Assembly (NCBI GenBank): GCA_047495785.1
Contig: JBLDXI010000002.1
Location: 1,674,001 to 1,738,000 of the forward strand
Length of the DNA stretch: 64,000 nucleotides
Reading direction: 5' to 3'
From: Lepidodermella squamata
Lineage: Eukaryota; Animalia; Gastrotricha
Shown piece after piece: positions 16,901 to 61,042 of this stretch. The position numbers and the translations under genes are program-made. The notes beneath the pieces are model-generated. The model saw only the letters and a list, made by a program, of their open reading frames with translations. It searched no databases and had not been told where the DNA came from. Position 1 is the first letter of the stretch. Each line of letters opens with the position of its first letter.

Positions 16901-19900
16901 TCAAACTGCACTAATAAAAATTGATTGGAATAAAACGCATTAAGGAGGACGTACCCGAACGTGATTGCCAGCAGCAGCGAGGTGAAGTGCGGTGGAGCCG
17001 TCGTTATCGCAGTGGTTCTCATCGAGACCGCGATCCAGCAACATTTCAACACAACCAACATCACCAAACCGAGCGGCGACAGACAACGCGCTCCAGCCCT
17101 GTGCGTCAATCGCGTCTACGGACGCGTTCCAATACAACAGCATTCTTAGCGCTTCTTCGTGGCCCTGAGATGCGGCGAGGAAGAGTGCAGTTCTACCGAA
17201 TGAATCAGCTAAATCGACGTCGCAGTCGTTTTCGAGGAGCAGCTCACACGCTTGGACGAGGCCTCGGCTCGCGGCGAGGTGCAGGGGTGACGACCCCTCG
17301 TTATCGACCGCCTCCGCCGGGCATCCGGCCTCGAGTAGCTGGGTCATCAGGCTCAGCAGGCTGTCTTCTTCGTTTTCCGGCTGCGAGAGTAGCGCGAGGT
17401 GCAGACACGTCCGGCCTAGCGAGTCTCTAGCCGCGAAATCAGCGCCCAGGGCGAGCAGCACGCCGGCGATTTCCGCCCGGCACGCCGCGCACGCTGTCAT
17501 AAGCGGCGTCCGTCCGTCGCCGTCGTTATCCGGCGCATTGACCGCCGCGCCGGCCTGCAGCAGCCGGCGAACGGCCTCGACCTGCCCGTTCAAAATGGCA
17601 GCGTCCAGCGGGCTGCAGCCGTTATTCCGCAACTCGCCGTCTGGCAACGGGTCAAGCTGCGCGTTGACGTTTGCCCGGCCGGCGATTAATAAGTCAATGA
17701 CTCCCATGTGGCCTGACCAGGCGGCTGATCTTAACGGAGTCCAGCCGTCGATATCACACGACTCGACCTGAATTAAAAGAAAAAAATGAGATAAACATTG
17801 GATATTTTTTTGGATTGTTAATTAATCTAATTATTATTTTAATAAATGAAGGAGAAATTGAAAAAAATAGTAATAAAAATTCCACCTTAATTTTTTAGAA
17901 ATAAAGAATGATAGGTAAATTACACGTCCAAAACCACTTATGTATTCTTAATCAACTGATTTATGATTTACGATATTGGCTTTTAACTTAGGTAGAGTGA
18001 AAAGCCAAGAAATTCGTCGAATTCCAATGTAACAAAACAAATTAAAAATTATTTTATGCTGTAGAAAATTTTTTCCTACAAATAAAGCGAAGTATTATTG
18101 AGGGGGCTATCACGTGGCATACTTCGTTCTCATTTTAGTGAAACTCATATCCTCCGCTGCAAAATTCTAACTCAATCACGGGGATGAATGTGGTATAGCA
18201 ATATTTTCTAAAATGTCTTGGTAATTCCAAAAAAAGAGCGAGGCAAACGAACAAGGCTCTGATAAATCACTTCGGGTCTTTTTGCCACAAATTCGGTTTT
18301 TTTTAAAAAAAAAAGCGCAAAATTATTGGTTCACTAGAAGCATTTAACCCGGAAATTTGGTTCCAAGCTGGACGAAGATTCAGAATTACTAACCAATATC
18401 CGTAAAATCTATACTGCAAATGAGAATTTTAGTTAATAACGTAAAATAATAATTTCTAAATGAATTTAAGCGAATTAAATTGAATCTAAAAGCTTACGTT
18501 AGCTCCCAAATCTAGCAAAAGTTGCACGACTTTCTCGAAGCCGCACTTCGACGCAAGAATCAGAGGAGTTTGGCCGAATTCGTCACGAATTTCCAACACA
18601 GCCGAAACTGAATCGATTGTCTCAGCAGTGGTAGTAGTAGCAGAAGATAATGACGCTCTGGTATTAGATCTCTGCAGAGAAGGCGGCCGCTTCAACAGGT
18701 CCTGGCACGCGTCGGTATCACCGTTCTCGATGGCGGAAAACAGCTGGCGCCGAAAATCGTCGATCGGCGAAGCGCGACTGGCAGCGGCCAACGGTTGGAT
18801 GGGGCGGGGTCCGAACGAGGCAGCTATTGTAGTAGCCCCGCCTCCCGACGATGAGGCATGCATTTTTGAGGAAGCAATCTAAACAACAACAACAACAAAA
18901 ATCAACTGTGTTATCTCTCGGCCAAACACAGTTCGGATGGCTAGCAATGATGAATGGGTTGGAAAAATCACGCAAAACATCATTAATCAAGCGTAGGATA
19001 ATAAAACCTAGGATGAGTGATGCTAAGGCACGCGGATGAGTGATAGTCAAAGATGTGAGAATACATTTACACAACCTACTACTACTGTTGTGTTAAAAAC
19101 GGAGAGAGACACAGAAGAACATAGAGAGGCCAAGTGTGCAGCTCAGCCAATCTGAAGATAAACACGCGCGATGGGAGATTAAGCGGCGTATTAGCCTTTT
19201 ATACGAAAAAAAAACCACCACCATCACCGTGGTCAGAAAACGGTGAAGCGAAAGCGCGCAGCAATTCCGCCGCACAGCTGGCCGAAACTATTTACTAACA
19301 CGGTGGCGGTCATCATCATGCAATCATCATCATCATCATCATCAGCTGGCAAAAGCAAACGCTTTTCCGACCTTGCGTTACCATGTATGTATGCAGTACC
19401 GAAATAGCGGCTAGTTATTATTATTATTGTTATACAGTCCTACCGAATAGCCGGAAAAAAGAATAAACAAACGGAAAAGCGTGCGCTTTTTAAGGCGGCT
19501 GGCTGGGGACCTAGAGAGCCCATTGTCGCCACATTTTTCTGAGACACAAGAGCTACGTCTAGTGTATAATTGTAATATTATTACATTACGCAAGATCTCG
19601 TTCGTGTTATATTATATTATTTTAAAAGCGTGCACTAGAGTAGAAAAAAGGTTGCGGCTACAAAAAGAGTGAACACAACACACGCGCGAGCAATCATCAA
19701 CTCGACGACCACCAACATCTAACGGCGCCTAATGATGATGCAGCAGCATGATGATGATGGTATATTACATTACACGACAAAACAAACGCAAATGTCGCGC
19801 GCCTTTTACATGTTATAACCAACTTCTACAAAAAAACAAATAGACATGAGAAATCAGACGCTGATGCGGCAAGCAACACAATCGATTTCGCGCTACTAAT

Positions 19901-29882: not shown

Positions 29883-32199
29883 ATGGCGCCAAATGAATCG
29901 AAGCGAGTTACTACGCGGCGAACTAATAACGGCTATCACGAAAAGCCCGAGCATCAATCAAGGTTAAATTCAATTATTTAATTATTGCCAAATTATGTCA
30001 GATTTCAATTGAATAGGGCTGAATTTATGCTCGATCAAGACTGGTGGAAAAAGACGATAATCTACCAAATTTTTCCGCGATCATTCTGCGACGGAAATGG
30101 CGATGGCTACGGCGACTTGCGCGGCATTATCTCCAAGCTCGACTACTTTGTCTACTTGCACGTCAATTGCATATGGCTGAGCCCGATCTACGAGTCACCC
30201 ATGCGTGACTGCGGCTACGATATCAGCAATTTCAAGGCTATCGACCCGGTTTTCGGAACCCTCGAAGATTTCGACGAGCTGGTCGATGGGTGCCATAAGC
30301 GCGGCATCAAACTGGTACTCGATTTCGTGCCGAACCACTCGAGCTCAGATCATCCGTGGTTCAAGGAAAGCTGCAAATCTCGCGATAATCCGTACTCCGA
30401 TTACTACGTCTGGTGCGATGGTTATCAAGATGGGCAAGGCGGTCATTGGCCTCCTAACAACTGGGTAAAAATGGGTTTTTTATAGGAATTAAATTTTTTT
30501 TTTAATTTTTTTAATTTTTTTTTAGCTGAGTGTGATGGGTGGTCCAATGTGGGAATGGTGTGAATCGCGCCAGCAGTACTATTTGCATCAATTCATGCCT
30601 GAAATGCCGGATTTGAATTTCCGAAACCCGAAAGTTTGCGCCGAAATCGAAGACGCCTTGGCATTCTGGCTCGATCACGGAGTTGACGGCTTTCGAATCG
30701 ACGCTATCAAACACCTTTTCGAAGGTTTATTAAAATATTGATTATTTGCACTTTTTATTTTTTTGAAATTTAGCCGAGAATTTCTATCAAAACGAAGACC
30801 CAACCTGGCGTCAGGACATTCCGGCCTTCCACTACGAATCGGTCCGCCACCGGCACACTATTGACCTGCCCGAGATTCATACGGTTGTGAGAAGTTGGCG
30901 ACGGCTGCTCGACGAGTACCAGAAGAAAACCGGCCTATACCGTTGCATGATTCAGGAAATCTACGAAGACTGGGGCACCACCCTTGACCAGGTCATGGAA
31001 CACTACCACAACGGCAGCGATGCGCCGTTCAATTTTCGCCTGGTTTCGCGTTTCACTCGCTATTCAGGCGGCTGGAGCTTGAAGCAAATGATTGAAGAAT
31101 GGTAAACAATTATTTGGTAATTTAATGACATTTTTTGTCAATTTATTTCAGGTGGTATCGAATGCCTCCTGGGAAGTGGTCGGTGTGGGTGGTGAGTTGA
31201 ATTATTGAAAAAAAATTCAAACTATTTTTCAAATTATTTTTCAGATCGGAAATCACGATTACCCGCGTATTGCTGACAAATTCGGACCTGAATTCGCGGA
31301 TGCTCTCAACGTCTTGCATTTGTTGTTGCCTGGAACGCCATGCACCTACTACGGCGAGGAGTTGGGCATGCGTGGAAAGCTGTTGTCGTTTGAAGAAACC
31401 AAAGATAACTGGTCGAAACGCTTTGGCCCGGTAAATAATTAACAAAAAACCGGAATATTTATTTTATTTTTGCAATTAGGAACTGTATCATTGCTACACT
31501 CGCGACCCGGCACGTGGTCCCATGTTGTGGGACAGCTCGGAAAATGCTGGATTCTGCCCTCCAGGTGTCAAACCATGGCTACCACTCCACGAAGATTACG
31601 TTGGAACCAATGTCGAGGTGTGCAATTTGAAACATTAAAATTTTTGAAATTTTGAATTTTTCATAAAAATTAAAATTTAAAATTAAAATTTTTGAAATTC
31701 ATAAAATTTAAATGTTGAATTTTTGATTTTTGAATTCAATTTTTTGTATTTTTCTAATTTTTAGACTCAGCAGTATTCGAAGGAGATGACTTCGCTTCAG
31801 TTCTATCGCGAGGTTGCAATTTTGCGGAAGGAACCCGAATTTCAGTCCGGGACTTTCCAATCCGGCTACACCACGCAAAACTTGTACACAATCATTCGCC
31901 GCCTGGCGCCCGAGAAGTACAACGAAGCCGAGAACGATTTCGGCTATCGTTATGACGTCGTTCTCAACGTTGGCCACGACTGCGAGTGCTTCGACACGCC
32001 GGCTGGCAAGTTGTTCTTCTACGACGGGCAGAATTTCCCGGACGTGCATGACGGCGCCGATAAGCCGCGCATCGTCCTTCACACGAACAATTTGCGGCAA
32101 GATCAACGCAGCGCCGTTGCCGCCTTCCCGTTCGTGCCGCTGAACATCTATCCCGGCCAAGCGTTCGTCATCCGATCACGCCCGAAATACAAGTGCTGA
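29883..32199 (+). CDS. GH13 alpha-glucosidase/maltase-like, paralog 1 (8 exons)
   Basis: [37 protein letters not shown], nucleophile [12 protein letters not shown], acid/base [28 protein letters not shown]. Exon 1 is 29883-29962 and the introns are GT-AG. Confidence 0.92.
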
Positions 32200-33452: not shown

Positions 33453-33730
33453 TATATTTTTTTAAATTTTACTTCTGATTTTCTTATATTCTAGACCGCA
33501 TTCTGCTTCGAACTTAGACAGCGCCAACCATGGGTAGGCAAATCAAATGTAATGGCTGAAACGGTTTCTTCAAGTGCGCAATAATTAAAAACACAGGGAT
33601 CATGCCAAATAATTTATTAATGAGAATAAATTCTCGAAAAAATGGACTATTTCAGTTTTAAATAATAAAGAAGACTGTCATTTATAATCATCTTAAATAT
33701 CTGCTCTCTGCGAATTTCAAAGACTTGTCT

Positions 33731-36700
33731 TCAGCCGCCCTTGTTCCGAAAAGTTTCGCACGCGACTGCGTTCGCAAAGGGGTCCCCAGTATAACATTCT
33801 ACATTGTCAAGGTAGTAGCCCTGTGGGTAGGTTTTGAAAGCCGGGAAGAACCTGTAAACCGCACATTCATAACCTTGCGGCTCATCGCCGCTATCAGTGC
33901 CACCCCACTGTCTCGCACCAGAAATAGGTTGGAAACTGGTCCCGTCTAGCCACTTCAAAGTACCAAGCTGCTTTTGCAATCCAACCAGGCTGGTAATCGT
34001 ATTGTTCAAAGGCTGTAGTACAGCTCTCAATGCATTTTGTTCCGCTGCGGATTTGACCATTGCTAGCAGGCCAAAGTTTTGCAAGCAGATTCGCTGGGCC
34101 TCTTCAATCAAGTATACATTATTCTTCGGCTCAAGGACGAAGTATCTCTTATCCGCCTTAACGCAACTCAATCTATCCGGGAAGAACGTATCCACCGGGA
34201 CTTGACCTTCATTCGGCAAACAAGCTGAAATAGAAGGGAATTGGCAGATTTACCTACAACATATTCCAATTTTACCTAATGCTCTACAGGAAACTCTCGC
34301 CTCCGCTCCGATGCAGCGAACGTATCCAGTCTGTGGAACAATTGACTTCATAGTATTAACATTAATTGAGCACGAAATACCTGAGGATAAAGATAGTTCT
34401 CACATATGACGCCGGAGATTCCCTCGCTGCAATTTTGAAGTTCCAGGAAAAGGTCAGTCATGTAGTAGTAAAGAAAGCTTCTTCGTAGTCTCGCGCACCA
34501 TGACCCTTCACTACCTTCACTTTCATAATCGATTCCCATCGTGGCTGCATATTATCATAAAACTTGATCAAAAATAAACATAACAAAGCTCCGAAACCTG
34601 TCAAACCACCAGAACCCACAGAGTAGTCTATGTCCGTCAACTGTGAACCATCGACCCATGTAGGATTGGGTCGATCCGAGGATCTAGGCTCAATGCCCAA
34701 CCAAAGCTTTGTATCACCAAAAGTGGCGCCTTCGCGGCGTAGCCTGATCAAATCAGAGTTACTTTGAAGAGTTGCCAACTGCCCCCCGCCAGCTGCGCAG
34801 AAGGACTTCGCATCGGTGAAATTTAGTGGCATGCCAGTATCCAACAGAGTGTACACCCGTTGGGCGCTCTTGCAGTGATCCAATGTTAAGTAGGCCTGCG
34901 CTCTGGGCAACTGAATTTCAGTCGGAGAGCATTCTTCAAATGATAAAAGAATTTTGAAGTGGGACATTTTTTGTTACAGCAGCTTACCATCTGGGGGTAA
35001 AACACATCTAGCTGATCCCGTTGAATTGACGCATCGAATAACTCCGGTTGTTCGAGCTAAAGTCGCCGAGGGGGACGACGACGATGACGACGATGATGAT
35101 GAAGCAGGTTTCAATGTCTCGCAAATAGCGGCCCTCATTACATTCCCGTAATCACAAGGAATATCGTTCAATAAGTAATTTTGATTTTCGCTGTAAAACT
35201 TGATGGAGCCACAATTATCAGGACCTAAATAGTTGTTGTTATTGAAATGCTTAAATAGATATAGCTTTCTACCATTCGGCTCAGGATCAGCCCAAAGTTG
35301 GAAATTGGAAGGAAAAGGGGCTCCGTCTACCCATTCGTACTTGTCCTGATTACGGACGAGACCCACCCAGCTGCCTGACTCGGCCCAATTGTTATTATTG
35401 GCGACCGAAAAATTTTGCACCGCCGCCAAATCTTGCGGGGTAAGGATCGTAACTGGTTGGCCGCCGTCGACATTACACAATTGGAAAGCGGTTTCGAACG
35501 AGTTGATCGTTGACGGTTGATAAGCTACGTATAGCTCTTTCACAGGCGATTCACATTCTGCCTGGGTAGCGAATGCGACGCCAAGTGGCATTTGCCTCTC
35601 GTTCGCTCCGGTGCAGCCTATAAAGCGAAGTTATAGACCATGAGTTAATGCGGTGAGCTGACTACCTTCTGCTGCAGGAACGCATCTCTTCCAAGAGGCG
35701 CCATCTGAATTGACACATCGAACGAAGCCGGTTGCCTGGAATAAAACTGCTGAATGATTGTCAATTTTTATAGCAAGAACCTACCGGGGCGTCGTAAGTT
35801 TCGCATAAAGCTGCAGTGAAAATGCCCGCCTGGTTACAGGAATCATCGTTGATATAAACGTCCATTGGAGCCAAGTCGACCGCATTGAAGATGACAAACT
35901 CTGTGCACAGTGACTCCGAATTCCCTGCATTCATATATGTATGTATGAACCAAATGCAAGCCATCAATGTCCTCATACCATTCGGCTCCCCAGGCCCCCA
36001 AAGACCGGGTACAAGTTGGTATGCTGAACCATCGTGGTATTTGAGTTCGCCATTCTCTATAACAAGCCCAAACCATGCCACATAAGTGGCTTCGCCGATA
36101 AGCCCGTTCGCGTAAATGACCCCTTTCAGTTGTTCCAACTCAGCTTCACTCTTCACGGTCGCCAGTTGCCCTCCAGCTTTATTGCACCGCTGTTTCGCTA
36201 CCGGAAACAACACGTTATAGTAAAAACAAATTCAATATATAAATGAGTCACCTCTGTCAAAGCTATCAATGTAGTTTTCATCATCGTTAACAGCAAAGAA
36301 TCGTTTTACGGCTCCCTCGCAGTCGGATTTCGTAGGAAACGACTTCCTTGTTGGCATCTGATAAGAGTTTTCAGGGCACCTATCTGAAATCCAGGAACAC
36401 ATCAACATGTCATCGAGGTTATTCACAGCCTACCGTCACCAGATTTCGGCAGACAGCTAACTGCGCCGTTCGTGTAGTTAATACAGCGAATATGTTCCAC
36501 ATTCGTTTGCTGCACCTCCGCCAACTCTACACCAAATGTTTCGCAGATTGCTCCTCTGCCTTGCACGGCTTTGTCTTCGACGTTGACCATGCCAGATTGC
36601 GTGTAAATTGCCCGGGCATATTGAATAGGCGGTTGAACAGGAGCGCCACTTTGCCAGTTTGCGTATGTCAGCTGTTCGTTATCCACCCAAAAATAAGCAT

Positions 36701-39700
36701 AAGAAACGTATTTTAGCCCAACCCAGCCAGCACTCAGGCCTTCTCTAGCCAACAAATTCAGCACCGTTTGATGCTCGCCCGCATTTTTTACAGTCGCTAG
36801 TTGGCCATTTGCAGCCAAACATAAATTGTCGGCTTGAATAAACGTCCCAGCACTGCTTTGCGCGGACGGAGGCTTTATGACGAAGTAAGACTTCTTGGCA
36901 TTGAGACAATCTGATTCTGTAAGAAATAAGCGTTTTCGGGGCATCTGATAGCTCGCGAAATCGGCACAAGCTGAAAAAAGTTCGAAAACATCAGAAAATT
37001 AGGAAACAATTTTATCACGAAACTGTTTAAATTTGCAAGGTAACAAGCGACAGCACCGCCTTGACTCGTGCGTATACAGCGACGCCATCCAACCTTTCAA
37101 AATTTAAAATAAAGCATTAGCCATCAGGGCAATTTTCATTTAGAAATTACTTACGAAATTGGCACAACTAGCATGATTTGGTTCGAAATATCTCGATCGA
37201 TTAAAGACTGCCATCTGAAATGAAAGAAATTAGTTTTCCTTCCTCAGGTCAGCAAATCGCCGACACACCTCAGTCTCAGTTTGAGCATCACAAAAATCGT
37301 CAGAGCATCGGAAAGTTCCATCATTTTTGGCACAATACCTAGCTACCTATTTTTCGTGAGGAAATAATGTCAAAACAAATACGAAATTATTGAATGGCTT
37401 ACTCCAAGGGTGCAACTTTCGATGCTACTGAAAACCTTGCTGCTCAGCGCCGTCTATTTGCAACAGTCTTTACCAATAAGTAGAATAAACCGTGGACAGG
37501 GCTTACATAACCCGGTGAACATCCAGGTGTTTTCAGTACGCAGCTAGGATTTCTTTGATCAGCGTCAACACAGCGTATTACCTCAACCTAATATTAAGCA
37601 TGAGAAATATGGTAAATTCGGAAAGGATCCCAACCTACATTTGCCTTGCAAACTTGGAGAGCCGGGTCGTAGTTTAGCTGCACATTTTGATAGCTGTCAA
37701 AAATTTCGATCTAGCAAAGACTCAGAATATACTCGAGCGCATTGAAATTCATCTTCTCATTTTACCGAGATGCCGTTGTAGCAATTGCCATACGTAGTAA
37801 CTGTGTATTCATTCGTGGCATTGTTGAGACAGCACATGGCAGTCTGATAATGAATTCTGGCAATAGGATTAATTTCAAAATATCATCGTTGCCTCACCCC
37901 TGTTTCACACAGATCCGCGGTCTGAAAATATTGAATTGGGGCCGTTGGATCTAATGGGGCGAGCTTTATGAGAGAAATAGAGATATTCTATACGAAAAGA
38001 TGTGACAGCGGAACGGCTCTTACGTCAATAGCGCCGATACTGCTACAGCCGGGTGAGACCCGTAGACAACCTCTGAACTGACGAGTCGTAGGGTCGATAC
38101 AACGGCCGAAAGGTGCTGCAAAATCAATTGGGTTCCTTTAATTTAAAATGACTCTGCTTCGATTCGAACTAACCGCAGTCGGGGAGTGAGCATTGGCCCG
38201 TTTTGTCGGTGCTAGTGTAGCAATAAGCGGCCTGCTGGCCTTCAGGGTTACGGCAAGTAGCGGCAGATGGAAGCACTGCACCTCCCGGAAACATCAAAGG
38301 GTTCAGCGTAGTCTTCGTCGTCCATGAAATGCATGGATCCATACTGGCAGTTCTAGCCATGGAACCTTCGTAGTCGTAACCAGTGTTCGTGAACGTGCAT
38401 TCCTTAGTGAGACGTGATGCTGCTTGGTTCGCACAAGTCGCGTAGGCGACCATAGTAAACGATATGGAAGATATCGTGGCATCTGGGTAGAGTTGCTGAT
38501 TGTGTTGAAGCGTCATAACAGCCCATTTATAATTCGTCTGGAACAATCGACCGGCCTTGACAGAGCTTGAGCAGATCCTGAAAAAATCGATAAACAGGCA
38601 CGTCTCAAACTCAACTGAATTATAGGCTGACTCACTTATTTCCAGGCACAGCAAAATTTGGTCGAGCTCTAATTTCAACGTAGCTCCAGCAACCATTTTC
38701 TATTTAGCAAAGATTAAGATAAAATCCCACTGAAAAGTTTAAAAGCGAACCATCACCACCGAGTTGGGGTGGGCTCTCGAGCGCGAAAACCAAGCCGGTG
38801 CCAGTAGTCGATACGTTCCAGAAGCATTCGCCGCTATCGTAGATACCGGGGGTGAGGGAAATTCGGCTTTTACCACACGGCGGGACACTAACCGATCCGC
38901 CGCAGTTTGAGTTCGGCAATGTTGACGGAGACACATTCTGGCAGTTCGGACCGGAGAATCCGCGGGGACACAGGCACGACGCGCATGTGGTAGGGTTCAG
39001 GTAACCGTTGTTTTCACACACCGCATTAGCATTTCCGCATCTCAATGCTGAAAAATAGGTTGTTGAATAATATGAGATAAAATCATAAATAGCATGTAAA
39101 ACCATTTGAAATAATGGCTGTAGTCTGCGGCCGGTCGTCTCTCTTTCGGAGGCAATAATTCAAGATTACCCAAAATGTTAGTAAATTTCCAGCAAATTTG
39201 GCCTCATCGAAAAATAAATAGCCACAACATTTTTCTCGAAATTTTTTCGCTTTGCTCGTTGATTTAGTTTTAAAGCTTTCAATAATTTGATTAGAGCTCA
39301 GCAATTAGACTTGGATAATATATTATTATATATCCACAGGCATTATACTATTAGATATTATACAATAAATCTAATTATTAATTATTAAAGTCTTGTTTTT
39401 GTTCCATCTCAAATTTCAACTTGAGATATTTGATATCAGACGTGAGTTGTCTCTTAGTTCATAAATTCCTAAAATGGGCGTGCTAAAACATGGCGTCAAG
39501 TTCAATTTGCCTCTTTTGGGTTTCAAGGCGCTCTTTTAACCGGAAATTTTTTTACATTTTAAATTGATCGTATAATTGATATAACTAATTACATTGACGT
39601 ATCATGTATAATACTTCAGAGCAAGTTAAACCTAAAAAATTGAATTTAAAAACCAATCGTCCGCTTAGAAAGGCAATCCAATACTTCAATTCTTGATTTA

Positions 39701-41171
39701 GGAGGCAATTGGCATGACGTTCCTTTTTTATTATTGCAAGCGGCCGGTTCAGGGTTGAAGCTAAAAAGCGCCCCGAAAGGTTCACCGCCGGGGGCAATTT
39801 TTGCCGGGAGCGAAAATGATTTTAGAACCGCACTTGGCTCGGTGATGGGTTAACGAAGTCAGGAAAAACAGTTTAAAATAATTCTTCCAATATAGGTACA
39901 AGTTATGATAATATTAATGAAAAAAATCAGAAAAAATCCGAGAGGAAAAATAGGTATAAGGTTTTCTTTCGAATTTTCTGACGAACTCAAACAGTTAATT
40001 TTAGTTCAATGGTGGTTTCTTCCGCCATCGACTTCGGCGGCAATATTGAAATAATTTTATAGTTGCAGTCATCCGAAAAGACAGGAAAGAAACAATTAAT
40101 GCGGTATTAGCTTTTTGCCCTATTGCAAATTTCTTACCCCTGACACCTAATAATCGTATTAAACAATATTAAAAATAATATCCCGTACCCTTGAAAAATT
40201 ATGGAAAAATAATCGATTTCTTGGACTCGCCTGTGCAGTTATAGTGGAGATTTATTTTTTGAAAGTCAATAAAAGATATGAATTGTGTTTGGCCGAGGTT
40301 GTATTGAATGCGAGGCTCTTTCGTCGTGATAGTCGGCTTGCTTGGCGAGCTTTTCCAGAACCAACTCGGATGAGTACTCGACTCGGTATCGTAGATCGTG
40401 TCGTAGTTGTTGTCGTTAGGGTCAATTGCGAACAACGCAGCGGATTCTCTATTTTTCGCAATTAATTAATTGCGGGAAAATAAATCAATTCGATAGAACT
40501 CACGCTGGAATGTTATCCGTTTGCACAGAAACATAAGAATCTCGATCAGTTCTTACATGCTCATAATTCTGAAATTTTCAGAGATTTGAAATTTAACCGC
40601 TCTCAGGAAGAGAAAAATAGGTATACCAGCCCTAAAGCTCGGCCGATCAAGGCTGCTATCAGCGGGACCTATAGCGTTAAAATCAAATAATTAAAAAATG
40701 CCATGGAGTTTTTAATTTTTAATTTATTTACACTTGTCAAGCATGGCTGTCCCAAAATGACGTAGTTTGGAGGTGCCGTCATTCCAACTTTTGCGAAGCA
40801 CCTGAACACATAATTTGAAGCTTCGAATTTTTCTTTCAATTTCACTCACTCTTGACCCAGTGTGAATATCATTACATTTGGCGTCGTAATATCAAATTCC
40901 AGCGACCAAGCGTCGGGCAGTGGAACAAAATTGATGCACGTTGACTTGGACCAAATTGTCATCGCAGCGGTGATGCTGTTGACGTAACGATTATCTTGAT
41001 CAAAGGAACAGTTAAATAATTTATCTCCTCAACAATTAACTCACCCAAATGCGTAGTATCGATGATGTAGTTGACGGTTGCGTTTGGCCATAAGCCGGCT
41101 GAACGGGGAATCCCTTCTACGCCGCAAAGACACCATAGTCCGATAACGACGAGAATCGAAAATAATTTCAT
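33731..41171 (-). CDS. Secreted multidomain pseudo-astacin/lectin: signal peptide, inactive astacin, EGF, CUB-like, kringle, 4-Cys repeats, 5 x (4-Cys repeat + C-type lectin); about 30 exons
   Basis: Signal peptide MKLFSILVVIGLWCLCGVEG; astacin hallmarks WPNATVNY, W..STCINFVP, EHVRTDRD, GQTQFISFIDFQKINLHYNC; EGF CENNGYLNPTTCASCLCPRGFSGPNC; kringle GYDYEG..C.SW..CRNPEG..CY; five CTLDs (GGQLAT, WVGL, W.DG, EPN, AICET). Small exons at 38120-36970 splice in frame and connect the kringle to CTLD1. Confidence 0.8.
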
Positions 41172-46392: not shown

Positions 46393-49290
46393 ATGACCTG
46401 GAAAACGGTTTTCTGGGGTTTTTTGCTGGTTATCTCTGGCTGGTTGCTCTGGGATGTAGACCAGATTGCTCGCCTCATTACGAGCAACACGCTGGTCCTA
46501 AATTTATGTGGGATTGAACATGTTTTCGAACCTTTTTTCCATCTTTTCCGATTTTCATTGAATTCGCTGGTAATGCTCTCAACAATAATCATTGGAACTT
46601 TGCTTATCGCCGTGGGTGAATCCTCAAGAATTGAACTTCTGTCCAACTTCAAACCGAAACGCCTTGAATTCGAAACACCAAGAACCGTGAAGAAACGTCG
46701 TGGCCCTTGCTAGTCGTCGATAACTGCCATTAAACGCCGGTTTGTTATCCTTGTTGTTTGCTTTGCTTTGGGCGAGAAACTGCAATCTAACTATGAATCT
46801 AATTCAATGAAAGCTGTACAATTGCCCCGTCATAGCGGTTTCCAAATGCAAGACATCTTGATAATACGGTATTCATGTCGCAGGAAGCTCATTCGTGGAA
46901 GAGGCCAAGCAGATTGGTTGGTCTATTTGTTGCTCATAACTGCAGGTGACATTGAAATGAACCCTGGCCCGGTATCATCAAACGAAACAATTGATCATGT
47001 ATGGTCAGGCAGCGTCGTTGTTGCTCAGGTTGAAAACGCCCTGAACGAAACAAGGGTTTCATTGGATTTCAACCCAGCTGATAGCCCTCAACCTGCACCC
47101 AGTTCGATTCAGAAACCCAAAAAAGAAAAGACGGTGGTCTGCACTGAAGAAGGTTGCAAAGCTAAATTTCTCGATAACAGAGGCCTTGGATGCCACATTC
47201 GAATGAAACATAAACTGCGGCTGGAACTAATGAGAATCACGTGGAACCTACAGTGGAATGTTCTCACTGTGATCGCAAATTTGCTACGAATAAAGGTTTA
47301 GCTCAACACATCAGGTCAGCGTCGGAAAGAAACGGTCGAAAAGTTTGCAAGATCTACAACTACTACAACTGTTGGAATCGAAAAAGAAGATCGTACCGAG
47401 ATGACCAAATCAAAGAAACAAGTTTCTTTTTTTGCTGAATGGAGCGTCAAATTCAAAACTGTGATAACTAGTAACTGTTCCGATGAAGAATTCGACGAAG
47501 CTGTGTCAGAATTCATGGAGAACCTCCCTAATGTTATTGACGATTTACCGGGCCCTAAGCACCCGGCTCGAAAATATGTCGCTGCCCGAAAGAAAAAGAG
47601 AAAGAACAAAAACTCGCCATCGAAGAAAAACTTTAAGGCATCGTCGAATCCTGCCAGAGCAGCAAAGCGATCGAGAGAAAAATCTAGACATCAATACGAA
47701 TACGAACTGGCTCAATACCTCTTCTACAATCGGCGGCGTCAAGTCGCAAGATTAGTGACCAGCAAGGCCAAGTCCAAAGGTTGCCTAATACCGATAAGTC
47801 AAATTAATTCTTTTTTCGCAACACGATGGGGAAAAGCTAATGACTCGACACGACCTTTCTACGACAATGCGATGACAGTAGACGAACAAACAAAAATTGA
47901 CTCTACTTTCGAATCCGAAACAAGCGCTGACGAAATAAAAGCCGCCGCGGCCGGGATAGCACTTGATACATCTCCTGGACCAGACAGAACACTAATGAGA
48001 GTACTTCATGCGGAAGGCTGCATTGACGTTCTTGTCCTCATATACAACTCCATGCTGAAAAGGAAAATGCTTCCGAGGAGCCTCAAATTAGCAAGAACAG
48101 TGTTGATCGACAAATCTGGAGATTTGGGTGACCCAAACAACTGGCGTCCAATTACGATAACCTCACTTGTTCGAAGGGTTTTCGAACGAATGCTTGATCG
48201 ACGACTACGAGAATACGTAAGTTTTTCGTCTAACCAGCGTGGATTTACATCATGCGCCGGTACACATAAAAACTCGTCGATTGTTTCCGGTTGTCTAAGA
48301 AAAGCGAGGGCAGAAAAGTCTACATGCGTTGTAACCTTTCTGGATCTGGCAAAAGCCTTTGACAACATTGGCTTTGAGCACATTCAGCGCACTCTGGAAA
48401 CATTACCGATACCAAGCAACCTGCGTGAAATGATTCTGGAGCTAATTAATCATAATTCCACTCAGATCGAGGCAAATGGTCACAAAACTTCTAAAATCTC
48501 ATTTCAAAGAGGAGTTATGCAAGGCTCACCAATCTCACCAACCATCTTCAACCTTTGTATCGATTTTGTCCTTCGTGAATTGTCAGAAAAAGAAGTAGCT
48601 GATGCCTATGGTTTTAAGCTTTCATCAGAACTAGCAAACGTTTCAGTGCTCGGCTTTGCAGACGACACAACCCCAGTCGGAAATAGTCGTGATTCCGCTG
48701 CAACACTCGTCGAAATGGCTCGAAACCTCTTCTCTCAAATAGGCTTGGAAGTTAACGTAAAGAAATGCGCAGCGATTATCGTGGAAAATGGTGTTTTATC
48801 CTGCGATCCTTTGATTTTAAGCAACGGAGATTCCATTCCGGCAATCAAAAACGATGAAACGATCAAATATCTTGGCGTCACCTTCCATGATGAAATTGTG
48901 TTTGACGAAGCAGCCGTCATCTCTGAACTGAAGGAACAACTAGAACTGCTAGCAAATTCGAACCTATTACTAGCAGACCAAAAACTGACTATTTTGACTC
49001 AGTTCATCTGGCCAAAGCTTATTTATCCGTTTCAAACGGCGCCAATTAAAGCGATCAGGAAAACATTTTTGGAATCCGTTGACGTCATTATGCGTAGCGT
49101 CGTTAAAGAATGCGTCGGTTTGCCTACAAGCACGCCCACTAGCTTCTTCTATGCTGCTCGTAAACATCGTGGTCTTGGCCTTCCGAAAGCTACTTGGGAA
49201 GCTTATCTTCAAATATATAATATTTGTAGAAAATTGTTAGTTAACGGCGAACCCCTGGTACTGGCCTGCAGAAAAATGCACGATAAATAA
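46393..49290 (+). pseudogene. Retrotransposon polyprotein: hydrophobic leader, 2A-like peptide, ZnF, ZnF, RT (stop at 46711, compensating frameshifts near 47212 and 47320, endonuclease missing)
   Basis: ORFs 46393-46713, 46768-47301 and 47401-49290 share one frame, while the second zinc finger lies in a shifted frame. The RT ORF ends shortly after the thumb with no CCHC/PD-(D/E)xK region. Confidence 0.75.
46948..46971 (+). other. 2A-like ribosomal-skipping (StopGo) motif DIEMNPG/P
   Basis: WLVYLLLITAGDIEMNPGP matches the D(V/I)ExNPGP consensus with the typical LL..AG upstream context. Confidence 0.85.
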
Positions 49291-49993: not shown

Positions 49994-52900
49994 ATGTATC
50001 TTCTGGCGCTCTTTGTGGCCTACTTGCTTCTCCAACCGTTATCGGGTATCGAGAGGTCGTATCAAACGGATTTGAAAAATGCTGACCCGTCTATTAGCCC
50101 GATTCAATTAACCGTGTACGCTGACTATAACGATGGCTTCACACCCGGCCAACCGCCCGCTACACCATGGCCACTACCTATTCCCTATACGTTCAACAAT
50201 GGAACTTGGTATTCGAGCTATGTTGGATATAATGATATCAGTGAGTTCATTCGGGAATAAATTTGCTTCAAGTATTTATCCACCACCAATCGCTGAACGC
50301 TGAATGGCACTCATTATACTTCGATTTTACAGATCAAAGTACAGAAGCAAAAAATTTGCGCGCGAAATTAGAAAAGTGATGTTATCAAAATGCTTCAAAT
50401 TCCCCACTCTTCAAATTGTCATTGTGATTTGAATTTCATTTTTCGACATTTTTACGCTGTGCCACCAAGTAAACAAATTCGCATTAAAGTCATCGTCTCG
50501 GAATTGTTTTTCGCGGATGATCTGCGCTCTCGCAAGGGTAAATCTAGCTTGACAACGATTTTTGTTTTCAATTTACTGTCCTTACTCTCATAGTCAAGAA
50601 AAGAACGGCTCAGAAGTGGTTTGAGCTCGAATTGCCTCACGTCTTGCATCTTATCGTCACACTTTTCCGCGCCGATAGATGCATCACGATACCTAACTTG
50701 AACTGGTATTTGGAAATTTATCCCGATTTTCTCGGAAAATTGAAGCCCGGCAGAAGCAAAATCTCAGTCTTGGCTAAAGCTCGGCAAATGCGTGAAATTA
50801 TCGACGACCTGGTCTTCGATCTTAACAGGTTCTGGAGATTTTCGTCAGGTTTTTATGTTTAGACGAATGTAAAAAATTTGGAGAATTTGAACAATTCTAA
50901 CCGTAAAATTGTTAAAAATAGGCAGAAGCCAATGACCTTGGCGGTTACTATTTCGCAAAATTTGAATTCCGCGCGCCATTTTTTGCTTTCGTACTTTGAC
51001 CTGCAAAATCGAAGTATAATGCTATCAAATTATAAACTTAATAATTTATAATCCTGTGTCTCAAAGGCAATGTTATAGTTTGTATATAACACAGTATACC
51101 AATAAAAGGTTTTCTCTTGGAAATGGTTTCTTTATAATCAATTTTGCATACCATTTTTGGTGTACACTTTATTTCTGACTAACCACGCGGTGTGTAAGGA
51201 TATAGGCTCTGTAGTTACTAGATGTATCAGCTACCTCTTCGCTCACATAATATTTTCCATATGAGAGGCACTCCGCCAGAAAACAGCACAGACATACATA
51301 TGTTCATTGTTATTTGAGAACTTTCACCAGGAAGCAACAAAGGTACCCTTTTTTGAAAATGTGTAATTATCTCGTCAAAAAGAGAGTTTTTTTCTGAACA
51401 CTGAACACATTGAAGGTGTCAATGTCAAATTATCCAGCAAAATTAAATTTCAAGAATAATATGCGTAAAATAAAAATAAAATGAATATTTGGGCTGTTTT
51501 CTTATATATGGAACCCCTTTTCTATCTACTAATTCTACTAATCCTTTTTTGTGTGACAGCTGATTACGACAAGGCCATTGCGATGCAAGCTTTAGCTCAA
51601 ATCGAATCGGTAACCTGCTTGCGCTTTGAGCAAAAACCTTATATTGACCTGAATCAATCCAACTCGATCATGTTCTTCCGCATTAGGTAAATTATAAAAT
51701 TATTCTCAAGCCTGTTGTCTGAATTATTCATTTTATCTCTTATAAAGCGATCCATATGGCGTACACAGTGTTGATTATCCTTTACGATTCATTGGCGTCG
51801 AATTCCTACAAATCAGTCGATATATCCCGTTCGAGGTGACTTTCCTGCTGCTCAGCTGTGAAATCCATTCGATTGTGTTTTTGCACTCAGATTCCGGCCA
51901 TGCTTAGAAAGATTGGCCACGTTCTTGGACTGACATACGAGGTTAGGCGGCCAGATCGCGATCAATACCTTACCCCCTATCCCGGGAAGGAGGATAGGTT
52001 TGCTTTCATTCAACATCGCGAATTCTTGCGCCAATTTTGAAACAATTTAAGTTACCCTATCAATGCGGCTCAAACCTACTACAACGCGACACCATTCGAC
52101 TACGAGTCGCTTTTTAATCCATTGATGGACGTTAATGGTGGAATACAGCTGTTCGATTGGTACCCGAAGGACCGGCGATACATGGCAAGCGTTGGCCAGT
52201 CTCATTATCTTTCATTGTTCGATACAATAAAGCTGAACACACTTTACAAATGCTTTGGTCAGTCCTTTCGAATGTTAGCTATCTAACTCGTATGAGTAAT
52301 TTAGCCTTTATTCAATATGGGGTTTACACATATTTTAGACCGAGTAAATTAACATTTTATGAGAAATGTTTTTTCAGATTCGGATCCGTGCAAGAATCCG
52401 ACGATCTCATGCCAAAATGGGGGCTATCCGAATCCCAGAGTAAACTGTACAAAATGCGTCTGTCCAATTGGGCTCAGCGGCGATTTCTGCGAAATCCCAT
52501 ATCCGACGGATACCGCGAATGGCTGTGGCGGTGAAGTTTTCGTTGAACCCTGTAAATCTGTTGATATTTCGACTCCCAAAGTCGGCACAACAAATTCAAC
52601 GCGTTGTTCTTGGCGTATCAAAACGGTGTGATCCATTTCCTGTACCCGAAAATCACATTATTCTAACTTGGCATGTAGGGAAATTCTAGCGGATTGGTGT
52701 TCGGATTTCAAACCATTCCTCAGCTGCAACAATTAGGTAAGCGAACCATTATTCGGAATCCGCCGCTTTCATGGAACGCATTTCTTCCTAGGCTATGCGA
52801 ATTGCAATAATTTTGTTATGATAAGAGTTTTGGGACCTAATGGCAGATTTCCAGGATTCACGTGAGCATTATATATCAATGCGGAAATATTCATATTTCT

Positions 52901-54794
52901 TCACTGGATATTAGTTTTTGCAGCAATTCGCCAATCCTGGGCCGCGTCTTCGTCACCAATTATAATCAAGCGCTGGTCTACTCGGACATGCCCTTACAGA
53001 TTGAGTCCCAAAGCGCCGAACTTACAGTTTACGCGACCTGCCCTGGCGTAAAAGCAACTGAACTGACGCTAGAATGTCGAATTACCCCGAACGCCCTTGA
53101 CTACGAGGGATTTCTGTTGACTAAAACTGCAACTGGCGCAGCTTGCTCGCGATGGGACGCCGCTACGCAGTATAGCTTCACGGTTGCTCCTAGAGGCGAT
53201 CTAACAGCATCTAGAAATGCGTGTCGTTCGCAGTCCTCATTTCAATGTTTGATCGGAGACGATTTAGTCCCGTGCGAGAATGCTGATAGAATAAAAAAAT
53301 GCAGTGAGTCAATTGAAATATTGAATTTGAAAATTTCAAATCAAATACGCTTCAATTATTTTCTGTAATTCGAACTGTTTTATCATTCGGGTTTTTTAAA
53401 AGGCCTTTATGTTTTATTGACAGCCCAATTGGCTGTGCGTTGTATCAACTCGGTAACTGGCCAGTTCGAATCGTGCAGGCGGTATTGCTTGGAAGGTGAA
53501 ACTCCTTTCAAAGAGTGGCCAACTCGTTTCATGGACACCTGCAACAAGGGCGTGAGTTAAGGCTCGGATAAACGGGCAAACATGTTTGCCAAACATTGAC
53601 TTCAAACATTGTTTGTCAAACAACGGCTTCAAACACTGTTTGATCAAACATTGCATTTACACGTTCAAACTTTCTGTTCAAACATTGTTAAGACCAACTA
53701 GGCATTCAAACATTTTTGACCGTCTAAATACTCGTGTTTGAAAGAAAATGTTTGTGAAGTTTGTTGAAAATGACTTCAAACAAAATCACTCGGTCGAGCG
53801 ATTTTGTTTGACAAACATGCAAACATTTGGCGCTGTGGCTGCTGCGGAGGTGCCTGCCGGAACGACATATGCGGAAGTTTTGCATCCGCTTCTTAAAAAA
53901 AATGGATAAAACACGATCACATTGATTCGTAAATTGCTACGGTCACGCGGCAACGGAAAAAATCAAATCAGAGCGGTCGAAAATGTAAAAGCATTCTAGC
54001 CGTTTATGTCATTTTTCTCCTAATTAAACAAAATTTGCATAAATTTGCATAAATTATGCTAATTCCTGAATGATTTGCATACATTTTGCTAGTTTTCTTG
54101 CAAACATTGTTTGAGCGTGTAAATGAAAGTTTGACAAACTGATGTTTGAAGCTTTGAGAAGTGACCTTTCACCTTTTCCGATGTTTGACAAGCAAGTTTG
54201 ATCGTCTAAAAGCATTTCAAACATTTCCGTCAAACATCGATGTTTGATGTAAATGTTTGACAAACTGTTTGCCCGTTTATCCGAGCCTTTAGAATTTGAA
54301 TTCTGCCATTCTTAAACATTTGTGCTCCACAGAATGTCAAGAAATGCGTCAAAGGTTCGACTTTTCGTTGTATTGCTGGCGACCAAGGCTGCCTCTCCGA
54401 TGAGACCAAAATTGTGAGTTCTCAAAAGTATCTGCGGACTTTCAACTACCTGCTACATACTGCTTTAGATGTTCAGCAATTATGCCTACTTTGGCCGCAA
54501 TCTGCTAGCGTGCAGTCATCGAGCTGATCTCAATTGGGTACGTAATGCCAATAAAGCCAATAAAATTGCTTGGGAACCCTTGTGAACAGAAATACGTCCG
54601 CTGTTACCGTAACATTGGTAGCAAGCCGTTTGCCGATTGTCGACGTGCAGATTTCGGATGCAAACCTACTGAGGTAAGCCACTTTCCGGACTGCAAGTTT
54701 CGATTCACTTCAACGACATATCCCTGCTTCATATTAGGTTTCTGGTGCAACGCCGCCGTATACGGACCCTTTCAAGTGCTATGACGGCGTGTAA
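49994..54794 (+). CDS. Secreted pseudo-astacin paralog: signal peptide, inactive astacin, EGF, CUB-like, degenerate kringle, 3 x 4-Cys repeats
   Basis: Signal peptide MYLLALFVAYLLLQPLSG; WPLPIPY, IESVTCLRF, RKIGHVLGLTYEVRRPDRD, FDYES, GQSHYLSLFDTIKLNTLYKC; EGF CQNGGYPNPRVNCTKCVCPIGLSGDFC; kringle-like LDYEG..KTATGAACSRW..CR. Terminal exons splice in frame to TAA at 54792-54794. Confidence 0.8.
50312..51021. mobile_element. CACTA/EnSpm-like non-autonomous element in intron 1
   Basis: About 58-bp TIR starting CATTATACTTCGATTTT and ending AAAATCGAAGTATAATG, with a 2-bp CT on both flanks. Confidence 0.7.
51054..51130 (+). mobile_element. 5'-truncated retrotransposon insertion (3' terminal module only)
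   Basis: CTGTGTCTCAAAGGCAATGTTA...ACCAATAAAAGGTTTTCTCT is homologous to 49346-49420. Flanked by a 9-bp duplication TTTATAATC (51045-51053 and 51131-51139). Confidence 0.75.
53560..54288. mobile_element. PIF/Harbinger (Tourist-like) MITE in an intron
   Basis: TIR AGGCTCGGATAAACGGGCAAACA / TGTTTGCCCGTTTATCCGAGCCT, TTA duplication on both sides, and many subterminal CAAACA/TGTTTG repeats. Confidence 0.88.
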
Positions 54795-58620: not shown

Positions 58621-61042
58621 ATGGCTCCTCAATTTAATAGCTTGGAAGAACAACGGTAAATTTCTGAAATTTCGGTTTTTAACTGAAATAATTTGTTTAA
58701 TATCGTCTAGCGACAGTTTTATGCTGGACCCTGATTGGTGGAAGAAATCGATCATCTACCACGTGTATCCAAGGTCGTTTTGCGACTCGAACGGCGACGG
58801 CCATGGCGATCTACCCGGCCTGATTTCAAAGCTGGATTATTTCAGCTATCTTAACGTCACTTGTATCTACCTCAACCCGATCTACCCATCGCCGATGCGC
58901 GACTGCGGCTACGATATCACCGACTTTACTGGGATCGACCCGGTTTTCGGGACGCTCGAAGATTTCGATCGGCTTGTTGATGGGCTTCATAATCGTGGTA
59001 TCAAGCTGTTGCTCGATCTAATTCCGAACCACACGAGTTGCGATCACGAGTGGTTCAAGGAAAGTTGCAAGTCACGTGACAATCCTTACGCCGATTATTA
59101 CGTCTGGAGCGACGGCGTGACAGACGAAAATGGTCAACGAAAACCTCCGAATAACTGGGTAGGCTTATGAAATCTGAAAAATTAGAAATTGAAAAATTTA
59201 AATTTTCAAAATTATGATTTTTTGAAATTTAAATTTGAACTTTTCAATTTTTAATAAAAAGCAATTAAAAATTATAAATAAATTTTAAGCTAAAAAAATA
59301 AAGGCATTTTTAAATAAATTATTATTAAATTATTAAATTTAATTAATTTATTCCAGCTGAGCGCATTCAGCGGCTCAATGTGGGAATGGTGCGAATCGAG
59401 GCAGCAATACTACCTTCACCAGTTTATGCCCGAGCAGCCTGACCTGAATTTTCGAAACCCGAAAGTCCGGCTCGAAATTCAAAACGTGATGCGCTTTTGG
59501 CTGGATCGCGGCGTTGACGGCTTCCGAATCGACGCTGTTAAACACCTTCTCGAATCCGAAGATTTGAGTCAAAACGAGGAGAAAAGCTGGCAAACCCACC
59601 TGCCGTGGTACCACTACGAATCGTCGAAGCATCGCCACACGATTGATCTCAAAGAAAATCACGAAATTGTCCGCGAATGGCGGCAAGTTCTCGACGAGTA
59701 CTTCAAGCGGACGGGGATGTATCGATGCATGATTGTTGAGCTTTATGAAGATTGGGACACGAGTATTGATCATGTTATGGAGCACTACAACAACGGCAGT
59801 GATGCGCCGTTCAACTTTCGGCTGCTGTCGCAATTCAAGCGAGACTCTGGTGGATGGAAACTTCGAGAAATTGTTGAAGGCTGGCTCAACAAAATGCCCG
59901 AGGGAAAACGAGCGATTTGGGCTGTAAGTGTCGACATTTTTAATGGAACATTATTCAAATTTTTAAAATTGAAAATTAAAATTAAAATTGAAATGTCAAA
60001 AATGGAAAGTGATTCTAGAATTTCGAATTTAAAATTTTTTAGATTTAAATTTTAAAATTTTAAAATTTTAAAATGTATAATTTTTTATTTTTTATTTTTA
60101 TTTTTATTTTTATAATTTAAAATTTAATTTTTTTAATTTTTCGAAAATTGAGAATTTTTTTCATCTAGATGGGAAATCATGACAATCCTCGTGTTGCTGA
60201 CAAGTTTGGCCCTGAATTCGTCGATGCGTTGAATGCCCTGGTCTTACTGCTACCTGGCACGCCTTGTACCTATTACGGCGAGGAGTTGGGCATGCGTGGC
60301 GATAATCTGTCATTCGAGGAAACCCTCGATCATTTTTGCAAGATTTTTGGACCGGTTAGCCGTCGCAATTTTTGAATTTTATATAATTTTTCTTCAATTT
60401 AAAGGAGCTTTATCACATGTACTCTCGAGATTGCTGCCGTGGGCCGATGCTCTGGAACAGCGGTGAAAATGCTGGGTTCTGCCCACCTGGAGTCAAACCG
60501 TGGCTTCCTCTTATGAAAGGCTTCGAAAATTTCAGTGTTGAGGTGAGGAAACACTAAAAATCTAATAACGAATTTTATTTATTATTTATTGGTTTCAGGC
60601 CCAGAGAGATGGTAAGACCGAGTCGACATTGAAGTTTTACCGAGAATTGGCGTTTCTGCGCCAAGAACCTGAGTTTGTCAATGGTACGTACCAGGCCGGT
60701 TACACTACGAAGAACATTTACACGATAATTCGGCGCCGAGCTTTGAAGGACTGCGACGCGGCTTCGAACAATTTCGGCCTTCGCTACGACGTGGCGATCA
60801 ACGTTGGCAGTGAGCCTGAGACTTTTGACACCCCGGCGAGCCAGCTGTTCTTCCACGACGGCCGTTCGTTCCCGGACGTGGTCAACGACCGTGAAACGCC
60901 TCGCATTATCCTGCATTCGACGAATTTAATGCCGGAACAGGCTGAAATGATCAAGGGATTTCCGTTCGTGCCGATGACAGTTCACCCTGGGCAAGTTTTC
61001 ATCATCCGATCGCGGCCTAAATTCAAACCGAACGAAGAGTGA
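58621..61042 (+). CDS. GH13 alpha-glucosidase/maltase-like, paralog 2 (6 exons)
   Basis: Exon 1 MAPQFNSLEEQR spliced to DSFMLDPDWWKK; [40 protein letters not shown]. Closely similar to paralog 1. Confidence 0.92.

Follow-up and report, generated by a model that had tools for sequence, protein, structure and literature searches.

A probable secreted protein with a dead astacin-like head and five C-type lectin domains, encoded by a 29-exon gene of the gastrotrich Lepidodermella squamata

C-type lectin and kringle domains are among the accessory domains of astacins (Figure 1 legend in PMC9848320), and in the helminth astacins, whose section in the same review (2.7) covers those of nematodes, more than 100 different downstream domains occur (PMC9848320). 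Sequences whose zinc motif is not intact were left out of that review (PMC9848320), from which follows that dead forms fell outside its survey. Pseudo-metzincins are a known class, and its entries from family M12 are ADAMs, with no astacins among them (PMC11266112). Here we describe a gene on the minus strand of a 64,000-nucleotide stretch of DNA from Lepidodermella squamata (assembly GCA_047495785.1, contig JBLDXI010000002.1, positions 1,674,001 to 1,738,000 of the forward strand, or G000:C2:1674001-1738000 in the numbering of our searches; in the following, the window), in which an astacin-like domain with a dead active site is followed by putative EGF-like and CUB modules, a kringle, a block of small Cys-rich modules and five C-type lectin domains (CTLDs). 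The reading frame is intact and spliceable throughout, the order of its parts is conserved in a gene family, and its exon blocks are under purifying selection. We consider it probable that this is a single gene, and that its product, about 1600 residues long and rich in Cys, is secreted and serves for binding and not for cleavage.

Gene structure and domain order

All searches, Pfam scans and folding were run exon by exon, and the genome searched comprises 121 Mb in 151 contigs (eukaryotic, not human). When the minus strand is read in three frames and the exon boundaries are then set by coordinates, a model with 29 exons (E1 to E29) results, with a coding sequence of 4809 nucleotides, i.e., 1602 codons and a stop. 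Every exon junction is in frame, every splice site is usable, and neither a frameshift nor a premature stop is present. The ATG at 41171 starts the peptide MKLFSILVV..., and the TGA stop occupies 33731-33733; these are exactly the ends that an earlier, sequence-only reading of the window had given to the gene. Introns are 48-63 nucleotides long in 27 of 28 cases, and all of them are bounded by GT-AG except intron 6, which is GC-AG. The encoded domains follow each other in the order signal peptide, astacin-like, EGF-like, CUB, kringle, nine micro-exons with Cys-rich modules, and five CTLDs. The features are listed here, with the evidence for each in parentheses.

33731-41171, minus strand: whole gene (phases, splice dinucleotides and intron lengths tabulated for the exons; 13 paralogous loci colinear with it)
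41112-41171, minus strand: predicted signal peptide, MKLFSILVVIGLWCLCGVEG (19-residue Kyte-Doolittle mean above 2; cleavage site placed by inspection)
40231-41111, minus strand: astacin-like (pseudo-protease) domain, rest of E1 to E6, without propeptide (PF01400 on three exon pieces)
40627-40668, minus strand: exon E4, former active-site helix, VPLIAALIGRALGL (ALIGR in place of HExxH)
40504-40568, minus strand: exon E5, NYEHVRTDRD (aligned by tblastn with HHEHQRPDRD; third zinc His replaced by Tyr)
40367-40381, minus strand: degenerate Met-turn SSTHP (stands where SIMHY is expected; Met and zinc-ligand Tyr gone)
39048-40230, minus strand: intron 6, 1183 nucleotides, GC-AG, enlarged by repeats (aligns poorly with the closest paralog, L001)
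38941-39047, minus strand: putative EGF-like module with six Cys, first part of E7 (paralog profile; weak EGF_2 matches)
38436-38904, minus strand: putative CUB domain, end of E7, E8 and start of E9 (paralog profile; homologous exons)
38175-38393, minus strand: kringle with six Cys, end of E9 (PF00051)
37024-38115, minus strand: nine micro-exons E10-E18 of 51-92 nucleotides (paralog conservation; selection estimate below)
36434-36970, minus strand: lectin unit 1, E19, with Cys loop, CTLD1 without EPN, and the next hairpin (PF00059; structure model)
35666-36383, minus strand: lectin unit 2, E20-E23, with CTLD2, EPN at 35980-35988 and INDD (Pfam; exon table)
34988-35617, minus strand: lectin unit 3, E24-E25, with CTLD3, EPN at 35274-35282, LND (ND at 35163-35168) and a Ser run
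34276-34933, minus strand: lectin unit 4, E26-E28, with CTLD4, no sugar-site motif (PF00059)
33731-34224, minus strand: lectin unit 5, E29, with CTLD5, EPQ...LDN variant and the stop codon (PF00059)
33613-33618, minus strand: candidate polyadenylation signal AATAAA, about 115 nucleotides past the stop (inspection only)

Four of the micro-exons had been picked out by the sequence-only reading, and these are real in the sense that they splice in frame, as E10, E14, E16 and E18; between them lie five further ones (E11, E12, E13, E15 and E17), all with phases 0/0. The lectin units, the micro-exon block and the end of the kringle exon are all bordered by phase-1 introns, as would be expected had the gene been assembled by duplicating phase-1 modules. 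Outside exon 1 no hydrophobic stretch is found in the whole protein by the 19-residue Kyte-Doolittle measure. From this follows that there is no membrane anchor, in keeping with the lack of a transmembrane tail already proposed from the letters, and with the signal peptide the protein is predicted to be secreted.

Within intron 6, the segments 39126-39284 and 39643-39829 are pieces of a dispersed repeat, with about 40 copies in the genome at 70-79% identity; in other copies about 400 nucleotides separate the two, a spacing that would suit the two ends of a single small element. Most of the length of this intron cannot be aligned with that of L001, and gaps dominate the alignment. The GC donor at its border (40230/40231) recurs in L001, L004 and L011, i.e., in four of 14 family members with the present gene counted, and the others have GT at this site.

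The astacin-like head, the Cys-rich modules and the lectin units

The astacin profile PF01400 (cut-off 22.5 bits) matches at 40849-41028 with 16.3 bits, at 40503-40577 with 17.9 bits and at 40202-40465 with 36.1 bits, so that the first two pieces are sub-threshold and the third is well recognized. When the zinc site is compared with those of active astacins without introns from this genome, HEILHSLGLHHEHQRPDRD and HEVLHILGLFHEHQRPDRD, all six metal-binding and catalytic residues turn out to be replaced. ALIGRALGLNY stands in place of HExxHxxGxxH, with the first His changed to Ala, the Glu to Leu, the second His to Arg and the third His to Tyr, and in the Met-turn the Met is changed to Thr and the fifth-ligand Tyr to Pro. 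Retained are the family-specific Glu and the RxDRD motif (YEHVRTDRD in E5) as well as the four framework Cys. By its residues, the domain is an astacin fold predicted to be unable to hold zinc or to catalyse. The dead zinc site is common to all 13 paralogs introduced below, in which IAALIGRALGL is almost invariant; this means that the loss of the zinc site is older than the expansion of the family, and that the former active-site helix is still constrained. The LWP motif of the mature N-terminus comes about six residues after the likely signal-peptide cleavage, which leaves no room for a propeptide. The dead astacin and the missing prodomain were both claims of the sequence-only reading, and both are borne out.

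Zinc sites have been altered also in other astacins of this genome. The locus L019 (G000:C12:815400-816600) is an intronless astacin open reading frame (ORF) of another subfamily, also without HExxH (VVMQALGLPAEHQRPDRD), so that more than one loss of the zinc site may have occurred here.

For the segment between the astacin-like domain and the kringle, a profile built from the paralogs was compared with solved structures, and a cubilin CUB domain was matched with E 0.002 and the EGF domain of factor IX with E 0.007. The EGF-like region of the paralog alignment has six invariant or nearly invariant Cys, followed by the CGG start typical of CUB domains, and Pfam EGF_2 gives matches below cut-off in seven of 13 family members. 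On the homologous exons of the more distant loci L014 and L015, the CUB profile PF00431 matches with 28 bits and E 2.4e-6, respectively. The kringle is recognized in the gene itself, since PF00051 (cut-off 34.3 bits) matches 38172-38699 along profile positions 2-79 and scores 39.6 bits.

Beyond the kringle, E10+E11, E14+E15 and E16+E17 each form a stand-alone module with four Cys, E12+E13 is a further four-Cys piece, and E18 is the hairpin of the first lectin unit. The repeated four-Cys modules of the sequence-only reading are thus found as three free modules and one piece, and their Cys are invariant in the paralogs. In a Pfam scan of the micro-exons, the four-Cys modules match no family. The CTLDs, for their part, are each preceded by a two-Cys hairpin (hydrophobic-R-C-x8-11-C) plus a two-Cys loop. 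To see whether the free modules might be lectin units in decay, the micro-exons were scored with a hidden Markov model of the N-termini of the lectin units; E11 and E13 come highest with 6.5-7.5 bits, only slightly above shuffled controls at 3.2-3.9 bits, and E15 and E17 do not rise above these controls; the positive control E20 reaches 29-39 bits.

The lectin profile Lectin_C (cut-off 22.6 bits) matches CTLD1 in 36426-36998 with about 30.7-30.9 bits, CTLD2 in 35764-36231 with 25.4, CTLD3 in 34977-35630 with 29.1, CTLD4 in 34461-34973 with 21.5, just under the cut-off, and CTLD5 in 33734-34249 with 32.4 bits. The CTLD1 exon, folded with the paralog alignment, gives a moderate model (predicted local distance difference test, pLDDT, 66; predicted TM-score, pTM, 0.67), in which the hairpin at the end of E19 appears as two short strands at low confidence. 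Foldseek places carbohydrate-recognition domain 4 (CRD-4) of the mannose receptor on top with probability 1.0, and finds CD23, SP-D and DC-SIGNR as well; for CRD-4, CD23 and SP-D the probability is 1.0 at a TM-score of 0.70, normalized by target. This is the structure prediction that had been proposed as a check on the sequence-only reading, and it returns a CTLD fold for the exon to which it was applied. A language-model look-up has fragments of LY75 and MRC1 as its nearest clusters.

An EPN motif together with WND marks calcium-dependent binding of mannose, N-acetylglucosamine (GlcNAc), fucose and glucose. CTLD3 reads EPN-G-PDNC...LND-IPC once an in-frame intron of 48 nucleotides is removed, and among the 13 paralogs its EPN is retained in 12 (EPS in L013) and its ND in all 12 that could be aligned. 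CTLD2 has EPN...INDDSC, with EPN and LNDD retained in nine of 13 paralogs. That CTLD2 and CTLD3 keep EPN plus an ND motif, as had been noticed from the letters, can therefore be read from the exons and extends to the family. The EPQ...LD(D/N) variant of CTLD5 is likewise conserved in the paralogs, and CTLD1 and CTLD4 have no calcium and sugar site of the EPN/QPD plus WND type. In the linker after CTLD3 there is a run of ten Ser residues (35073-35102, minus strand), which may be an O-glycosylated hinge.

The gene family and the number of genes at the locus

A subfamily of 14 loci, to which the present one belongs, emerges when the CUB/kringle exon and the C-terminal astacin exon are used as genome queries. 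The paralog set consists of the 13 loci that were fetched, L001-L013, on contigs C2, C32, C10, C48, C9 and C3. The gene studied here is a solitary member of this family of about 14 genes, and L001-L004 form a cluster on C2. When the exon peptides are used as tblastn queries, the matches (35-90% identity) run colinearly from the astacin N-terminus to CTLD5, without any change of orientation, in all loci except L010, where they stop at E13 and the lectin half is absent within the 10 kb fetched. A tblastx comparison of 36900-38250 with the paralogs gives nine conserved coding blocks, each present in 8-12 of the 13 loci, and these coincide with E10-E18; the micro-exon peptides are conserved in 10-12 of the 13, with invariant Cys and the same exon ends. 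At the junction between the two halves of the gene, the donor of the kringle exon (E9) has phase 1, the intron has 58 nucleotides and the acceptor of E10 has phase 1.

Selection was estimated from Nei-Gojobori counts, summed over exon-wise codon alignments with the closest copy, L001, at synonymous distances (dS) of 0.44-0.62. The ratio of nonsynonymous to synonymous distances (dN/dS) is 0.11 for the astacin part, 0.25 for EGF-CUB-kringle, 0.31 for the micro-exons and 0.38 for the CTLD block, figures to be read with the reservation that the alignments were picked by tblastn protein similarity, which biases dN somewhat downwards. Since all pairwise values are below 0.5, both copies are under constraint and neither is drifting neutrally. 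Against the more distant paralogs synonymous sites are saturated, and the proportion of nonsynonymous differences (pN) is still far below that of synonymous ones (pS). The most conserved block is the N-terminal head, with the astacin domain strongest. Within the family, the pairs L007/L009 and L008/L010, on contigs C10 and C48, lie in opposite orientation and share 95-97% identity over kilobases, as would be expected if a segment had been duplicated recently or if two haplotypes had been kept as separate contigs.

Outside this subfamily, the more distant loci L014 (contig C81) and L015 (C20) have the order astacin-EGF-CUB-kringle(-CTLD) with HExxH retained. Relatives are found also in environmental DNA. 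HMMER searches with the CUB/kringle exon against 1.84 billion representative proteins found no full-length relative; they returned multi-kringle proteins of other architectures, as checked with Pfam, and a few short ORFs, which lie on the Logan contig L016 (SRR23086389) and on the metagenome contigs L020-L022 in ENA (ERZ23486787, ERZ27333047 and ERZ23486764). These four contigs match the astacin, EGF-CUB and CUB-kringle exons and none of the CTLD exons. L016 has no DNA match in the present genome, from which follows that it comes from another species. L020-L022 are eukaryotic contigs with tandem astacin-EGF-CUB-kringle genes (HEVGHALGLFHEHMRPDRD in L020). L014, L015 and L020-L022 share 30-47% identity with the present gene in the EGF-CUB and CUB-kringle exons. 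In L014, L015 and the environmental contigs the HExxH takes the forms HELGH, HEFAH and HEVGH, and the third His is present in L015 and L020; the astacin of L020 has the full zinc motif, HEVGHALGLFHEH (HEVGH...HEH). L014 retains the Met-turn as SVMHY, and L015 has ALHY, with the Met replaced.

For the dead form with five lectin domains no relative was found in public collections, by searches of limited reach. Word-index searches returned nothing for E9, E19 or the CTLD1 alignment, a weak absence as long proteins lie outside the lengths searched, and scans of Joint Genome Institute (JGI) metagenomes with two paralog alignments, CTLD1 included, were likewise empty within a limited reach. Genome-wide, these domain families are very large: astacin is matched at least 154 times and the kringle at least 150 times with a score (214 candidates), and C-type lectin candidates number 774. 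Kringles are often followed by a CTLD, e.g., on contigs C24, C7, C32 and C29. A genome search with the Rfam SL1 family, run without a positive control, gave no match.

On this comparative evidence, one large gene is favoured over two, because 13 loci are colinear with it, splice phases are conserved and each block is under purifying selection; that all 29 exons are joined in one transcript is what we infer from the same comparisons. The proposal of the sequence-only reading, that what looks like separate astacin and lectin genes is one gene, is supported to the same extent. Consider instead two genes that duplicate together, one encoding dead astacin, EGF, CUB and kringle, and the other a lectin with Cys modules and five CTLDs, starting somewhere between 38.1 and 37.0 kb. 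Several observations weigh in this direction and against a single gene: when intron 9 is retained a stop follows two codons past the kringle, which would give a short astacin-kringle product; the closest relatives found outside the genome, those on L020-L022, end in kringles without a CTLD-exon match; and many astacin-kringle genes of the same genome lack a CTLD. To these may be added, as points against our reading at large, the downward bias in dN mentioned above, and the fact that Pfam gives no EGF or CUB match above cut-off on the exons of the gene itself, so that the EGF-CUB part of the sequence-only reading stands by virtue of the paralog profile and the CUB matches in L014 and L015 and lacks a direct match of its own. 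Yet the phase-1/phase-1 junction with its 58-nucleotide intron is kept in 11 paralogs, and micro-exons that are conserved, in frame and under purifying selection fill the interval where a second gene would have to begin. No in-frame Met followed by a signal-like segment lies downstream of the kringle, and where members of the family do lie head to tail, as at L003, about 1.4 kb without matching exons separate CTLD5 from the next astacin start. In L014, furthermore, a kringle (46.3 bits) and Lectin_C (40.2 bits) lie in one open frame of 285 residues after the astacin and CUB exons, which directly shows that a kringle-CTLD fusion exists in this genome. Taken together, these observations make two genes improbable.

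It might also be that the gene is a decaying family copy, intact in appearance only, as the repeat insertion and the GC donor in intron 6 could suggest, and as L010, a member of the family without a lectin half in the DNA fetched, could exemplify. A pseudogene would hardly be expected to keep 4809 nucleotides in 29 exons clear of frameshifts and stops with all splice sites usable, nor to have dN/dS values of 0.11-0.38 against its closest copy at a dS of about 0.5, and the GC donor stands in a strong context (GCGAGT/GCAAGT) that recurs in three paralogs; decay is quite unlikely in this light. That the astacin domain would still be proteolytic, by means of other residues, is scarcely credible: the retained Glu, RxDRD and framework Cys and the high conservation of the helix are what an enzyme would have, but the three His, the general-base Glu, the Met of the Met-turn and the Tyr ligand are all substituted, and there is no propeptide to hold an enzyme latent. 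A single intact gene with a dead protease head is therefore the reading with which we go on. As nine exons of 51-92 nucleotides join its two halves, gene finders are likely to split genes of this kind.

A second astacin-like gene, of another subfamily, lies in the window at 51481-53368 (plus strand). One of three His is left in its zinc region, LRKIGHVLGLTYEVRRPDRD, and its later exons match the EGF/CUB and CUB/kringle exons at 35-37% identity, where Pfam matches neither; downstream of this gene no CTLD match was seen. In the space that separates the two astacin-like genes, at 46768-49290 (plus strand), are long ORFs of a non-LTR (long terminal repeat) retrotransposon, among them a reverse-transcriptase-like one of 629 residues. 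By eye, an Iroquois-type TALE homeobox ORF and ankyrin-repeat ORFs are seen among 6429-7763 (plus strand), 15266-17707 (minus strand), 31708-32199 and 59378-63322 (plus strand), and in the same set alpha-glucosidase/maltase-like exons flank the astacin genes on both sides.

Proposed role and comparison with known systems

As judged from their motifs, CTLD2 and CTLD3 would bind glycans of the mannose/GlcNAc/fucose type through calcium, and CTLD5, with its EPQ/LD(D/N) variant, may possibly bind such glycans too. The N-terminal head, consisting of pseudo-astacin, EGF, CUB and kringle, would bind a protein partner. With lectin arms at one end and a conserved binding head at the other, the molecule is proposed to bridge or coat glycosylated surfaces, which may be those of microbes or those of the animal's own matrix. 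The protein might instead be a structural part of cuticle, eggshell or mucus, or else a decoy by which the genome's many active astacins would be deprived of substrates or inhibitors, and not a lectin for the recognition of microbes. The sequence-only reading had put forward immunity, mucus, adhesion and egg coat as candidate settings. Nematode-type EGF-CUB astacins act on cuticle and eggshell, the head is the most conserved block, the Ser run suggests an O-glycosylated linker and astacin matches in the genome are abundant, all of which would suit such a part. The conserved EPN sites do not help to decide, since they fit binding of self-glycans and of microbial glycans equally, and we regard the structural and decoy roles, taken jointly, as possible but the less likely outcome.

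A more far-reaching idea is that the approximately 14 genes are specific to this lineage and encode a diversifying set of soluble proteins for pattern recognition, in which the dead cleft serves as a head that captures ligands or effectors and the four-Cys module is a new type of domain. In that case a soluble counterpart of the mannose receptor would have been built on a protease scaffold, and the free four-Cys modules would be an undescribed domain type; we hold this to be doubtful. Apart from it, the case is that of an unusually clean dead protease, where all six catalytic and metal-binding residues and the propeptide are lost, and which yet is the most conserved part of the protein and exists in about 14 copies. 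HExxH relatives with the same head are available for comparison in the same genome, and the case makes the fate of a protease fold that no longer cuts directly testable. The lectin repertoire of invertebrates is also enlarged, by a multi-lectin architecture predicted to be secreted and by a four-Cys module unmatched in Pfam.

The gene joins known kinds, i.e., the pseudo-metzincin, the multi-CTLD lectin and the astacin-EGF-CUB architecture. The sequence-only reading had not recognized the combination, and its novelty has to be tempered in two respects: C-type lectin and kringle domains are known accessories of astacins and pseudo-metzincins are known as such, and the same genome contains astacin-EGF-CUB-kringle-CTLD genes that bear HExxH.

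With the EGF-CUB-tailed astacins (MEROPS M12A, the nematode "NAS" type), the protein shares the PF01400 domain, the framework Cys, the Glu and RxDRD motif, the signal peptide, the probable succession of EGF-like and CUB modules, and presumably secretion. It differs from them in having neither zinc ligands, catalytic Glu, Met-turn nor propeptide, and in that CUB is followed by a kringle, four-Cys modules and five CTLDs. The HExxH genes L014 and L015 and those on contigs L020-L022 have the same head architecture, and differ in that HExxH is kept, in that there is at most one CTLD and in that the block of four-Cys micro-exons is missing.

The pseudo-metzincins ADAM2, ADAM7, ADAM11, ADAM22 and ADAM23 and UNC-71 of C. 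elegans are similar in that zinc and general-base residues have been substituted in an extracellular multidomain protein, and they keep the metalloprotease domain as a module for binding and scaffolding (PMC11266112). Dead proteases as binding modules are thus well documented for the ADAMs, and the review of pseudopeptidases has no astacin examples (PMC11266112). The ADAMs belong to M12B, are membrane-anchored, usually keep the Met-turn and have a propeptide, whereas the present protein is an M12A astacin, predicted to be soluble, which has lost the Met-turn, has no propeptide and carries lectin domains in addition.

With the mannose receptor family (MRC1, DEC-205/LY75) it shares the tandem arrangement of CTLDs, of which only some have an EPN-type site. 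Here the likeness is one of how the protein may work and not one of membership: Pfam finds neither ricin-type nor fibronectin type II (FNII) domains in any exon, there is no membrane anchor or tail, the CTLDs number five instead of 8-10, each of them comes after a four-Cys module, and the head is a dead protease.

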